From NCBI GenBank assembly GCA_002269645.1, contig NIVC01000025.1:434001-498000 (forward strand): 64,000 nt of DNA. The letters are read 5' to 3'. Position numbers and translations under genes: made by a program. The notes beneath the pieces are model-generated. The model saw only the letters and a program-made list of their open reading frames with translations, was not told where the DNA came from and ran no database searches. This DNA is from Macrostomum lignano. Lineage: Eukaryota. Each line of letters begins with the position of its first letter. Position 1 is the stretch's first letter. This document shows, piece after piece, positions 56,610 through 60,597 of this stretch.

Positions 56610-56784
56610 ATGATGCTGTTTTCATTCCAGCGGCGTCTGAACTTTTTCGGCTCAGCAGTCCAGCTGCGGCCTCTGCTGCTGCTGCTGTTGCTATTGGCAA
56701 CTGAAGTCGAGCTGTGCAAATCTTCGGGGCGAAAAAAAATCACCCGGAAACAAGCAAAATTGGCTGTTGATTGCGCCACGGCAG
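56610..56784 (+). CDS. Exon 1 of secreted thermonuclease gene (signal peptide)
   Basis: ATG at 56610: MMLFSFQRRLNFFGSAVQLRPLLLLLLLLATEVELCKSSGRKK.... Strong donor GCAG|GTGAGT at 56785, phase 1, matching the exon 2 acceptor. Confidence 0.65.
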
Positions 56785-56812
56785 GTGAGTCCAATTCGGA
56801 ATGGTTTACAGC

Positions 56813-58570
56813 AGATGAGGCATTGGGAGATGAGGCACAGGGAGATGAGGCATTGGGAGATGAGGCATTGGGAGATGAGACATTGGGAGATGAGGCATTG
56901 GGAGATGAGGCACAGGGAGATGAGGCATTGGGAGATGAGGCATTGGGAGATGAGGCATTGGGAGATGAGGCATTGGGAGATGAGGCATTGGGAGATGAGG
57001 CATTGGGAGATGAGGCATTGGGAGATGAGGCACAGGGAGATGAGGCATTAGGAGATGAGGCATTGGGAGATGAGGCATTGGGAGATGAGGCATTGGGAGA
57101 TGAGGCATTGGGAGATGAGGCATTGGGAGATGAGGCATTGGGAGATGAGGCATTGGGAGATGAGGCATTGGGAGATGAGGCACAGGGAGATGAGGCATTA
57201 GGAGATGAGGCATTGGGAGATGAGGCATTGGGAGATGAGGCATTGGGAGATGAGGCATTGGGAGATGAGGCATTGGGAGATGAGGCATTGGGAGATGAGG
57301 CATTGGGAGATGAGGCATTGGGAGATGAGGCATTGGGAGATGAGGCATTGGGAGATGAGGCATTGGGAGATGAGGCATTGGGAGATGAGGCATTGGGAGA
57401 TGAGGCATTGGGAGATGAGGCACAGGGAGATGAGGCATTGGGAGATGAGGCATTGGGAGATGAGGCATTGGGAGATGAGGCATTGGGAGATGAGGCATTG
57501 GGAGATGAGGCATTGGGAGATGAGGCATTGGGAGATGAGGCATTGGGAGATGAGGCATTGGGAGATGAGGCATTGGGAGATGAGGCACAGGGAGATGAGG
57601 CATTAGGAGATGAGGCATTGGGAGATGAGGCATTGGGAGATGAGGCATTGGGAGATGAGGCATTGGGAGATGAGGCATTGGGAGATGAGGCATTGGGAGA
57701 TAAGGCATTGGGAGATGAGGCATTGGGAGATGAGGCATTGGGAGATGAGGCATTGGGAGATGAGGCATTGGGAGATGAGGCATTGGGAGATGAGGCATTG
57801 GGAGATGAGACATTGGGAGATGAGGCATTGGGAGATGAGGCATTGGGAGATGAGGCACAGGGAGATGAGGCATTAGGAGATGAGGCATTGGGAGATGAGG
57901 CATTGGGAGATGAGGCATTGGGAGATGAGGCATTGGGAGATGAGGCATTGGGAGATGAGGCACAGGGAGATGAGGCATTGGGAGATGAGGCACAGGGAGA
58001 TGAGGCATTGGGAGATGAGGCATTGGGAGATGAGGCATTGGGAGATGAGGCATTGGGAGATAAGGCATTGGGAGATGAGGCATTGGGAGATGAGGCACAG
58101 GGAGATGAGGCATTGGGAGATAAGGCATTGGGAGATGAGGCATTGGGAGATGAGGCACAGGGAGATGAGGCATTAGGAGATGAGGCATTGGGAGATGAGG
58201 CATTGGGAGATGAGGCACAGGGAGATGAGGCATTTGGAATGGAGGCATTTTCCCCTAACAAAAACAGCTACAGCTACCCAGATCCCGGAGCAGAGACGCT
58301 GCTAGTTCAAGTACCGACCTGAGTGCGTTCCGTGCACATGACTTGGAGATGAGGCATTGGGAGATGAGGCATTGGGAGATGAGGCATTGGGAGATAAGGC
58401 ATTGGGAGATGAGGCATTGGGAGATGAGGCACAGGGAGATGAGGCATTGGGAGATAAGGCATTGGGAGATGAGGCATTGGGAGATGAGGCACAGGGAGAT
58501 GAGGCATTAGGAGATGAGGCATTGGGAGATGAGGCATTGGGAGATGAGGCACAGGGAGATGAGGCATTTG
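56813..58570. repeat. 15-bp minisatellite (GATGAGGCATTGGGA)n in the nuclease intron, ending in a 334-bp tandem duplication
   Basis: Arrays at 56813-58235 and 58346-58570. The unique tail at 58231-58345 is repeated at 58565-58679. Confidence 0.95.
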
Positions 58571-58959
58571 GAATGGAGGCATTTTCCCCTAACAAAAACA
58601 GCTACAGCTACCCAGATCCCGGAGCAGAGACGCTGCTAGTTCAAGTACCGACCTGAGTGCGTTCCGTGCACATGACTTGGCCTTTCATCTTGTTTTTCTT
58701 TTAGTCTCATTGAGAAAATAAGATTTCAGCATTTCTAGGCTGTATTTTATTAGTGCTCCCGCTGTTTCTGAGAAGCCGAAATGTTGATTAATTTCCGTGT
58801 TGAAATACTCGCGTTAATCCCATTGTGTAAGACTGCTGTCCGTCCATCTAGCTTATTAGATTCAAGCAATTGGCAACATTTCCCTTCTCTAGCTATCGTC
58901 AGAGCTTGATGGCAGTTTAAATGTCTATGGCCACTCTTTCTTGCGATTGGTTTAACGAG

Positions 58960-59194
58960 GTACACAAGCGCGCGGATACGTACGCAGTCATACGCACAGG
59001 CACACACTCACACAAGAGTGTACAGCGGCCCTCACTGTGCCCTGGGTGTTGGCCCTCAAGGCCGTTAATTACACGAGCAGAGCCAAGCCGAGATTCTAAT
59101 TTAGCCCCAAAGTAAAGTGACGACTGCATTTGGGAATCGAGCCTGGGCCGCTGGCACATCAGAGTGCCGCGCTGGACCACTAGGCTGGCTACCC
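58960..59194 (-). mobile_element. tRNA-derived SINE, same family as 5940-6156
   Basis: Minus strand CAGCCTAGTGGTCCAGCGCGG (A box) ... GGCTCGATTCCC (B box). Homologous body. Confidence 0.75.
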
Positions 59195-59659
59195 AGACTA
59201 ATAGTCCCCCACACACTTTGAGTCACCGAGTCATCAGTCTCATGTTTCACCACCTGCGCTAGTCAGTCATAAACGCGTGCAACACGAAACCTCGTTGACC
59301 GCCAAGTGTCGCTTTGCTACAGAACGAGCTGTAACCTTTATGTTCCCTGGTTCCAACCTTCGACGTCTTTGAAGGACAGCTTTTCTGCCCCAAAATAAAT
59401 TCAGTGTGGTGTGCGTGTTCAAAAAGTCTTCTACATTGATGAAGCTACCGATTTTGATTCAACGATACTGTGCGACATTAGCGGCCCTTGAGCTAGCTGG
59501 CTTCTCCGCTGAGTAGCAGAAGTCTTGGCAATTTGTAGCTGTGATGACCGGGTATGCAATAACTTTTAGCTGCATGCGAATCGCAGACAGCTCGCAACAA
59601 ACTCGGGATGTCTTCATTTTGTCTCAGTGTCAGTCTTTCTTAGTTTCTGTCTTAGTTTC

Positions 59660-60003
59660 TGTCTGTATATGTCTGTCTGTCTGTCTGTCTGTCTGTCTGT
59701 CTGTCTGTCTGTCTGTCTGTCTGTCTTAGTGTCTGTCTGTCTGCCTGTCTGTCTGTCTTAGTGTCTGTCTGTCTGTCTGTCTGTCTGTCTGTCTGTCTGT
59801 CTGTCTGTCTTAGTGTCTGTCTGTCTGCCTGTCTGTCTGTCTTAGTGTCTGTCTGTCTGTCTGTCTGTCTGTCTGTCTGTCTGTCTTTCTGTCTGTCTGT
59901 CTGTCTGTCTGTCTGTCTGTCTGTCTGTCTGTCTGTCTGTCTGTCTGTCTGTCTGTCTGTCTGTCTGTCTGTCTGTCTGTCTGTCTGTCTGTCTGTCTGT
60001 CTG
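59660..60003. repeat. (TGTC)n microsatellite
   Basis: Directly visible. Explains the VCLS ORFs. Confidence 0.95.
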
Positions 60004-60103
60004 TTCAGTGGCTATTGATTATAAAATATGCTTTGTATACTACTGTCTCAAAGTAAGTAGCATCGCAAACAAGTAGCATGCGCACACAACCCACACGCTA
60101 CAG

Positions 60104-60597
60104 AGAAGTACCTCTGCGGCTCCGTTGCTTCCATCCACGACGCCGACTCGCTGCGGGTCCGGGCCGACGGCGACCTGACGACCTCGACGACGCGGATTCG
60201 ACTGGCGCAGATCGACGCGCCCGAGCTCGACCAGGAGTTCGGCGCCGATGCCTTATCGGCGCTAGTTCGGCGCCTCCCGGTTGGCAGCCGCGTCTGCGTG
60301 GTCTCGCCTGGGCTCGACCGCTACGGCCGCGTGCTCGGCTTCGTCTGCCATGGCAACAGCGACATCAACCGATGGCTGGTGGCCGGCGGCCTCGCCTGGT
60401 GCTACCGCGGCCGCTGCTGCCCGGAGTACCGCGCTGAGCAGGCCGAGGCAAAGCGCAGCGGTCGCGGCCTCTGGGGCCGTGCGGTGCCACCTGTGGAGCC
60501 GTGGGTGCACCGGCAGCGGCGGCGGGAGCAGCGGAAGAACAATAAAGGGCGTCGTCCAAAAGGCGCCGCCGCCCAGCAGGGACGCGATTTCTTGTAA
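60104..60597 (+). CDS. Exon 2: staphylococcal-nuclease-like (SNase/thermonuclease) domain
   Basis: Acceptor CGCTACAG|AG at 60103. Reads KYLCGSVASIHDADSLRV...TRIRLAQIDAPELDQEFGADA...LDRYGRVLGFV...DINRWLVAGGLAW.Y...EAKRSGRGLW...PWVHR, with TAA at 60595-60597. Confidence 0.88.

Follow-up and report, generated by a model that had tools for sequence, protein, structure and literature searches.

How does an animal genome come to hold a nuclease of a type found in bacteria, plasmids and phages? The question is raised by Mlig008456, a gene in a 64,000-nucleotide stretch of the genome of the flatworm Macrostomum lignano (assembly GCA_002269645.1, contig NIVC01000025.1, here C25:434001-498000; this whole stretch is called the window, and positions are those of the window unless another contig is named). 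The gene encodes one staphylococcal nuclease (SNase) domain behind a predicted signal peptide; to our knowledge, the one other place where animals employ the SNase fold is cytoplasmic Tudor-SN. It is settled that Mlig008456 belongs to a genuine, intron-containing animal gene family with intact frames, probably under constraint. Its origin is best explained, with fair probability, by an ancient transfer into the Macrostomum lineage from bacteria or from their mobile elements, a direction and timing that we infer.

The SNase-bearing open frame lies at 60061-60597 on the plus strand and has the translation earlier described for it. The first-pass annotation of this DNA, made from its letters alone, had joined part of this frame in phase 1 to an upstream exon, for a product of 222 residues. 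The parts of the gene are as follows.

56597-56603, plus strand: TACTAAC, a branch-point-like motif that precedes the putative trans-splice acceptor by ~27 nt, with a presumed role in trans-splicing.
56610-56630, plus strand: genomic ATG and six further codons (MMLFSFQ), in frame; probably outron, and a start codon only without trans-splicing.
56625-56630, plus strand: putative trans-splice acceptor TTCCAG, which fits the M. lignano acceptor motif [T/C]TNCAG (PMC8629364).
56631-56784, plus strand: exon 1, with a basic n-region, a Leu8 hydrophobic core and the linker GRKKITRKQAKLAVDCATA with a conserved Cys; ends in phase 1.
56785-60103, plus strand: spliceosomal intron of 3,319 bp, GTGAGT...ACAG, phase 1; its junction is also present in the deposited protein.
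60104-60597, plus strand: exon 2, with the entire SNase domain, a basic C-terminal tail (RRREQRKNNKGRRPKG...) and a TAA stop at 60595-60597.

With the splice donor GGCAG/GTGAGT at 56784/56785 and the acceptor ACAG/AG at 60103/60104, the 175 and 494 nt joined from the ATG at 56610 give 222 codons in an uninterrupted frame. BOX15_Mlig008456g1, a deposited M. lignano hypothetical protein (marked 'partial', 215 residues), is 100% identical to the spliced product and crosses the identical exon junction (...DCATA-E-KYLCG...), which bears out the phase-1 join. The N-terminus of this deposited protein, RRLNFF, is encoded from 56631, the first base past TTCCAG. The M. lignano spliced leader (SL) is 35 nt long with ATG at its 3′ end (PMC8629364), and the published leader followed by a GTAAG donor is present in 30 exact copies in this genome; its terminal ATG, if joined to CGG at 56631, would keep the reading frame. 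Because the deposited protein begins directly past TTCCAG and the SL ends in an in-frame ATG, the Mlig008456 mRNA is probably trans-spliced, with the SL supplying the AUG, an N-terminus M-RRLNFF... and 56610-56630 as outron. The 222-residue product thus holds as a frame open from the ATG at 56610, but the start is probably SL-donated, giving 216 residues. Both the putative trans-splice acceptor and TACTAAC are kept in the copies of the gene on contigs C2300 and C4460, and the signal-type N-terminus is unchanged whichever start applies.

Exon 2 had been read as one SNase domain with all catalytic and Ca2+-binding residues in place, and both the Pfam match and the alignment to S. aureus nuclease A agree. 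Pfam finds a single SNase stretch in the protein, covering positions 1-105 of the 107 in profile PF00565 (E=4e-15; 56.6 bits, above the curated cut-off of 21), and the domain matches S. aureus thermonuclease chains in the PDB. The columns invariant with respect to S. aureus nuclease A are D19/D21 (HDADS), R35/D40/E43 (RIRLAQIDAPE) and D83/Y85/R87 (DRYGR), and the GLW...PW..R tail is present in the worm protein. In this numbering of the S. aureus enzyme, we take D21, D40 and T41 (backbone) to be the Ca2+ ligands and R35, E43 and R87, plus Y85, to be the catalytic residues. The nuclease A sequence used in the alignment, both trees and the profile scoring agrees with the PDB alignments. In 222-residue numbering, D73, D96, R91, E99, R134 and Y132 are invariant throughout the worm paralogues A, B and C introduced below, their bacterial relatives and the S. 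aureus nuclease. An AlphaFold2 model (mean predicted local distance difference test score 85.5, >90 across the domain) has the SNase fold, and its best Foldseek matches are S. aureus nuclease structures (E ~1e-9, target-normalised template-modelling score 0.72-0.79, root-mean-square deviation ~3 Å). Membership of NCBIfam EcnA was rejected, the match being weak and partial (30.6 bits against a cut-off of 180). Ca2+-dependent nuclease activity is predicted because the protein retains the Asp-Asp-(backbone) Ca2+ site as well as the Arg-Arg phosphate clamp and a Glu as general base; the domain would then act, as the S. aureus nuclease does, as a sugar-non-specific endo/exonuclease on DNA and RNA.

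Mlig008456 has company in its own genome. Six-frame searches of all 764 Mb (5,269 contigs) found SND1 and 10 single-domain SNase loci, every one of the latter above the PF00565 cut-off. They fall into three groups: A (contigs C25, C2300 and C4460), B (C568, C4119, C4013 and C1516) and C (C227, C111 and C1703). The groups are 44-49% identical to each other and ~99% identical internally, with three or four copies apiece, and the catalytic columns are invariant between A, B and C. Mlig008456 is thus one of three homeologous A copies, each on its own contig. M. lignano has hidden polyploidy (PMC10468722), which the near-identical copies of each paralogue group fit. A transposon-borne nuclease was considered and ruled out, given just ten loci in three groups of three or four copies, as polyploidy predicts. 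Models of B (Mlig022653) and C (Mlig018861 and Mlig002410) are deposited under the label 'TNase-like domain-containing protein'.

The gene structure is common to the family. A phase-1 intron of the form N/GTGAGT...CAG/ lies four residues past the conserved linker Cys in A, B and C, with lengths of 3,319, 734 and 3,522 bp, respectively. This common phase and position imply that the signal-peptide exon and its intron are older than the triplication. The A intron, repeats included, is kept in the C2300 and C4460 copies at ~95% identity. Of 489 nt of exon 2, five differ between the A copies; four changes are at third positions and one replaces a residue, against an intron divergence of ~5%; these counts are small, and the pattern fits purifying selection.

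Some copies and models are irregular. Exon 1 of the A copies holds several amino-acid differences between copies, against one in exon 2. In the C4460 copy, the GGAAACAAGC run of exon 1 (at the equivalent of window position ~56750) is longer by one A, which either shifts the frame or is a homopolymer error of the assembly. The B copy at C1516:1683-2060 (P0065) is frameshifted just before GLW, and the deposited protein of 166 residues has an unrelated tail; this copy is probably either pseudogenic or misassembled. The other deposited B model (P0036, C568 ~453320-453451) reads exon 1 in a different frame (VKEKHGILSV...) and loses the signal peptide, probably through mis-annotation.

Is the locus truly part of the animal's genome? 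The repeats in and beside the gene bear on this question.

54512-56579, unstranded: 21-bp minisatellite, ~101 copies, directly upstream of the gene (Tandem Repeats Finder).
56813-58583, unstranded: 15-bp minisatellite AGATGAGGCATTGGG, ~118 copies, in the intron (Tandem Repeats Finder).
58958-59186, minus strand: dispersed host repeat, SINE-like (short interspersed element), ~230 bp, in the intron (DNA search of the worm's own genome).
59670-60004, unstranded: (TGTC)n microsatellite, in the intron (Tandem Repeats Finder).
60745-61891, unstranded: 30-bp minisatellite, ~38 copies, just downstream of the gene (Tandem Repeats Finder).

Three long minisatellites, with 21-, 15- and 30-bp units, enclose or interrupt Mlig008456. 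The homeologues differ in the length of the intronic 15-bp array, which spans ~1.8 kb on C25 but just ~0.6 kb on C2300 and on C4460. The repeat at 58958-59186 gave 1,999 first-look candidates genome-wide, of which 40 were scored. Among these were the three homeologous intron copies (98-100% identity), a short match of the repeat to itself, and copies dispersed over many contigs with 81-88% identity. Its minus strand carries A/B-box-like motifs, and neither ARAGORN nor Rfam called a tRNA or SINE in it. The intron had been said to hold a host SINE and satellites; the satellites and a dispersed host repeat are there, but the identity of the repeat as a SINE is only plausible.

That the gene might be an artefact (contaminating bacterial DNA or a chimera of the assembly) or dead sequence (a pseudogene in decay) is scarcely credible. 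The high GC content at third codon positions (GC3) of exon 2 in copy A (0.84) would suit such an account, as would the 1-nt insertion in the exon 1 A-run of C4460 and the frameshifted paralogue B copy of C1516. Against it, three syntenic copies share the intron, its host minisatellites and the dispersed repeat; host genes and retroelements surround the locus on a 608-kb contig; frames are intact, active sites invariant and substitutions mainly synonymous; and the exon junction is reproduced in a deposited protein model. Contamination and chimerism are ruled out by the shared intron and host repeats of the syntenic copies and by the host genes and retroelements around the C25 locus. Bacterial contamination had been argued against from the intron's repeats, and the homeologous copies, together with a fibrinogen-domain gene and retroelements in the window, carry the same conclusion.

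Where, then, did the enzyme come from? It had been described as bacterial in type, and it proved far closer to bacterial, plasmid and phage thermonucleases than to worm SND1 or fungal LCL3. A phmmer search against 1.84 billion representative proteins gave 14,261 matches, with solely worm paralogues above E=1e-30 and the next matches 32-52% identical. All taxonomically named matches besides the worm's are bacterial (Pseudomonas, Salmonella, Xanthomonas, Klebsiella, Burkholderiaceae, Thiotrichales and others), and among the ~300 best matches listed there is no named eukaryotic protein except M. lignano's own. When 30 of the top representatives were looked up, taxonomic names were attached only to worm proteins and to two proteins from bacterial metagenome-assembled genomes, and three more carried a generic function label from the Joint Genome Institute (JGI) only. 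Bacterial genomes from many phyla yielded 424 confirmed relatives; relatives also occur in at least 5,000 plasmid records (3,893 on conjugative plasmids), in a few cultured phages and on IMG/VR contigs (273). Those that are named or were checked in context are all bacterial, plasmid-borne or phage-borne, with up to 47% identity to the worm protein.

The main rival to a transfer is vertical descent, in which a single-domain SNase of the LCL3 lineage, already present in ancient eukaryotes (for example, opisthokonts), was lost in most animals and kept in Macrostomum. The old paralogues, the spliceosomal intron and the host-like composition of B and C are all as this history would have them. Profiles built without worm sequences point the other way: A, B and C score 139-147 bits against the bacterial set, which was picked by similarity to the worm protein and thus inflates the worm score somewhat, but 19-32 bits against a 120-sequence LCL3 profile, below the median of 42 bits that bacterial sequences reach against it. 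Moreover, the worm proteins lack the LCL3 insertions and keep the bacterial PW..R tail, and the ~300 best matches listed include no named eukaryote other than M. lignano. The worm protein was accordingly rejected as an LCL3 member on its score and its missing insertions. We consider vertical descent improbable.

Neighbouring genes speak to the kind of donor. The nearest non-worm relative, P0069 (129 residues without a signal peptide, at 8001-8390 of a Logan SRR26065815 contig), has as co-directional neighbours a DNA polymerase A, a helicase, a radical S-adenosylmethionine/ribonucleotide-reductase-activase-like protein and an AAA ATPase, a gene content by which the module is phage-like. P0090 is next to Rrf2 and two-component system genes, a gap of 33 nt separates P0070 from an endonuclease III gene, and P0047 overlaps both of its neighbours by 4 nt. 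A non-bacterial donor, either another eukaryote (for example, diatom food or a protist) or a eukaryotic virus with a bacterial-type SNase, is very improbable. Such a donor would be compatible with a best identity of ~47%, which leaves the actual donor unsampled, and with close matches that are mostly unnamed metagenomic or Logan contigs; the inspected contigs are nonetheless all organised as in prokaryotes or phages, with tight co-directional genes, 4-nt overlaps, two-component systems and endonuclease III.

Horizontal gene transfer (HGT) had been proposed with a maximum-likelihood (ML) phylogeny as its check, and two ML trees were built: tree 1 with 102 rows and 173 columns under LG+C20+F+G4 with posterior mean site frequencies (PMSF), and tree 2 with 83 rows, in which IMG/VR sequences were added and long rows dropped. 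The S. cerevisiae LCL3 probe matched a database protein at 100%; the trees hold only database LCL3 sequences. The worm clade has support of 100/85 in tree 1 and 99/85 in tree 2, and the LCL3 clade 100/100 in tree 1. In tree 1 the worm clade is sister to P0069+P0090 (98/66), in tree 2 to P0069+P0070 (98/94). The worm proteins thus have prokaryotic or phage sisters in both trees, but approximately unbiased (AU) tests retain both a worm+LCL3 and a worm+SND1 clade.

Several points weigh against a transfer from bacteria. In the first data set the AU test retained the worm+LCL3 clade with p 0.448; in the second it did so with p 0.521, and the constrained tree was 2.38 log-likelihood (lnL) units better, a marginal advantage for vertical descent. 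The worm+SND1 clade was likewise retained (p 0.239, delta-lnL 46.5). The eukaryotic comparison set was limited to Saccharomycotina LCL3 and worm SND1. Because the domain is short (~140-170 aligned columns), the LCL3 and SND1 branches are long and mobile and the tests have low power, trees alone cannot prove HGT. Searches of the 1.84-billion-protein library, of GTDB genomes, of plasmids and phages and of IMG/VR turned up no close donor, with identity reaching a ceiling of ~42-47%. Composition is uninformative on origin because the GC3 of B (0.67) and C (0.72) lies inside the host range. Finally, M. lignano genes are intron-poor on average, and the intron-free state of the catalytic exon therefore counts for little.

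Against vertical descent, a worm+LCL3 clade that is forced together in the constrained tree remains nested among bacterial sequences, and the LCL3 branch is long and unstable. An origin from the worm's own SND1 was also rejected: the loci are separate and phmmer found zero similarity between the single-domain proteins and the worm's SND1 domains, although the AU test alone did not reject it. Ancient transfer thus remains the preferred origin. In such a history, the Macrostomum lineage would long ago have taken up a YncB-type thermonuclease gene of bacterial, plasmid or phage origin. The captured gene would then have gained a signal-peptide exon behind a phase-1 intron, plus six Cys. It would later have triplicated into paralogues A, B and C, with recent polyploidy multiplying each.

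What would the enzyme do in a flatworm? Its N-terminus suggests the secretory pathway. The Leu run of exon 1 had been likened to a signal peptide, and a hydrophobic N-terminus recurs in all three paralogues, each with one N-terminal hydrophobic core and no second hydrophobic segment. In copy A, hydropathy peaks at 3.58 over LLLLLLLLA, and no hydrophobic segment follows. The exon 1 linker is homologous in paralogue B. The Cys-rich domain and basic tail noted earlier are likewise real: the copy A protein has 8 Cys, and 39 K+R against 21 D+E. Six of the Cys are common to A, B and C, and most of these are missing from the aligned bacterial relatives. From their positions mapped onto the SNase fold, C55-C63, C123-C140 and C158-C163 may pair, and in the secretory pathway up to three or four disulfides would stabilise the domain. 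Mlig008456 is therefore best described as a putative signal-peptide-bearing protein of the secretory pathway, with secretion and disulfides predicted from its residues.

We tentatively propose, at a little short of even confidence, that a mobile-element thermonuclease was captured, given a signal exon and disulfides, and now serves as an extracellular or gut DNase/RNase in the digestion of prey or biofilm or in antimicrobial or antiviral defence. A different compartment is rather unlikely: the enzyme would act within the secretory/endolysosomal system, for example, in gastrodermal phagocytes that digest diatom nucleic acids, or be anchored by an uncleaved signal. Flatworm digestion is, as textbook background, largely intracellular, and the signal cleavage site of copy A (LLATEVELC) is ambiguous, without a canonical small -3/-1 pair. 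The corresponding ends in B and C nevertheless look classically cleavable (TAAAS/T and AMA/A), and the hydrophobic core of copy A, at just ~9-10 residues, is too short for a membrane anchor.

These proteins are already in public databases as hypothetical or TNase-like proteins. A literature search found no paper that names Mlig008456, Mlig022653, Mlig018861 or Mlig002410, or that links thermonuclease with flatworms. If captured and secreted, Mlig008456 would be, within the scope of this search, the first secreted member of the SNase family to be described from a metazoan, and the animal extracellular nucleases would gain a new class, that of secreted catalytic SNases. Functional gene transfers from bacteria to animals are few so far and often contested; this candidate carries the marks of integration, namely an intron, homeologous copies and host repeats. 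It would also exhibit a path of 'eukaryotisation', with a signal-peptide exon behind a phase-1 intron, gained Cys, probable SL trans-splicing and duplication. If the family descended vertically instead, a flatworm would have kept an ancient lineage of eukaryotic nucleases that has been overlooked so far. Origin and function are directly testable because transgenesis has been published for the model flatworm M. lignano (Wudarski et al. 2017, as cited in PMC8629364).

Elsewhere, the window is rich in mini- and microsatellites, and the surroundings of the gene are ordinary animal chromatin. Pfam matches mark three further features.

33329-35135, minus strand: gene with a fibrinogen C-terminal domain (Pfam).
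37-39 kb, minus strand: reverse transcriptase/RNase H, in the GC-rich block 37100-41400 (Pfam).
28568-29119, minus strand: integrase fragment (Pfam).

A near-duplicate of the signal-peptide exon of the fibrinogen gene (…MQHRCVLLFLVLCVSLVP…) lies ~9 kb off at 25435-25722 (minus strand), and a similar-looking open frame at 44900-45268 has no Pfam match; the fibrinogen-domain gene and these similar frames may form a small tandem family of secreted lectin-like genes. The GC-rich blocks (60-65% GC) at 21300-24500 (plus strand), 37100-41400 (minus) and 28568-29119 (minus) are retroelement remains, a status that for 21300-24500 comes from long open frames only. At 4581-4954, a 26-bp tandem repeat has a unit containing GGGTTAGGGTTA, an interstitial telomere-like motif. 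A 51-bp satellite at 50348-51322 (19 copies) is 99% identical between copies, compared with 87-91% in the other arrays.

How does the worm enzyme compare with known SNase systems? Tudor-SN/SND1 combines several SN domains with a Tudor domain and is cytoplasmic. Its domains are SNase-like with the same OB (oligonucleotide/oligosaccharide-binding) fold, and SND1 chains from the PDB turn up in the fold search. The worm's SND1 occupies separate loci on contigs C1829, C105 and C234, where SN matches fall on separate open frames over ~3.5 kb. Plant CAN1 and CAN2 have a single, Ca2+-dependent SNase domain and are lipid-anchored at the plasma membrane rather than signal-peptide-bearing. Fungal LCL3 (the YGL085W family) resembles the worm protein in being eukaryotic, with a single SNase domain and an N-terminal hydrophobic segment. 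Unlike the worm protein, LCL3 has insertions past IDAPE and in the beta5 loop or before the last helices, ends in ...TPGEYKKR instead of PW..R, and has none of the conserved worm Cys.

S. aureus nuclease A has the same fold and the same D19, D21, R35, D40, E43, D83, Y85 and R87 as the worm protein, and the mechanism is assumed to be alike, although identity is only 22-25%. It differs in a longer loop past D40-T41-P42-E43 (ETKHPKKGVEKYG) and has neither Cys nor a PW..R tail. The closest likeness is to the YncB-type thermonucleases of bacteria, plasmids and phages, which also consist of a single SNase domain of ~140 residues (PF00565), usually with an N-terminal export signal. YncB-type and worm proteins have the same motifs: (H/V)DGD, R-x-R-L-x-x-IDAPE-x-x-Q-x-(F/H)G without the loop insertion, DRYGR, GLW and P-W-x-x-R-R. 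The Excalibur domain (PF05901), present in many bacterial relatives, is not in the worm proteins. The worm genes differ from their bacterial counterparts in having a spliceosomal intron and a eukaryotic exon for a signal peptide and a basic linker that contains Cys, and their proteins have six conserved Cys and a longer basic tail.

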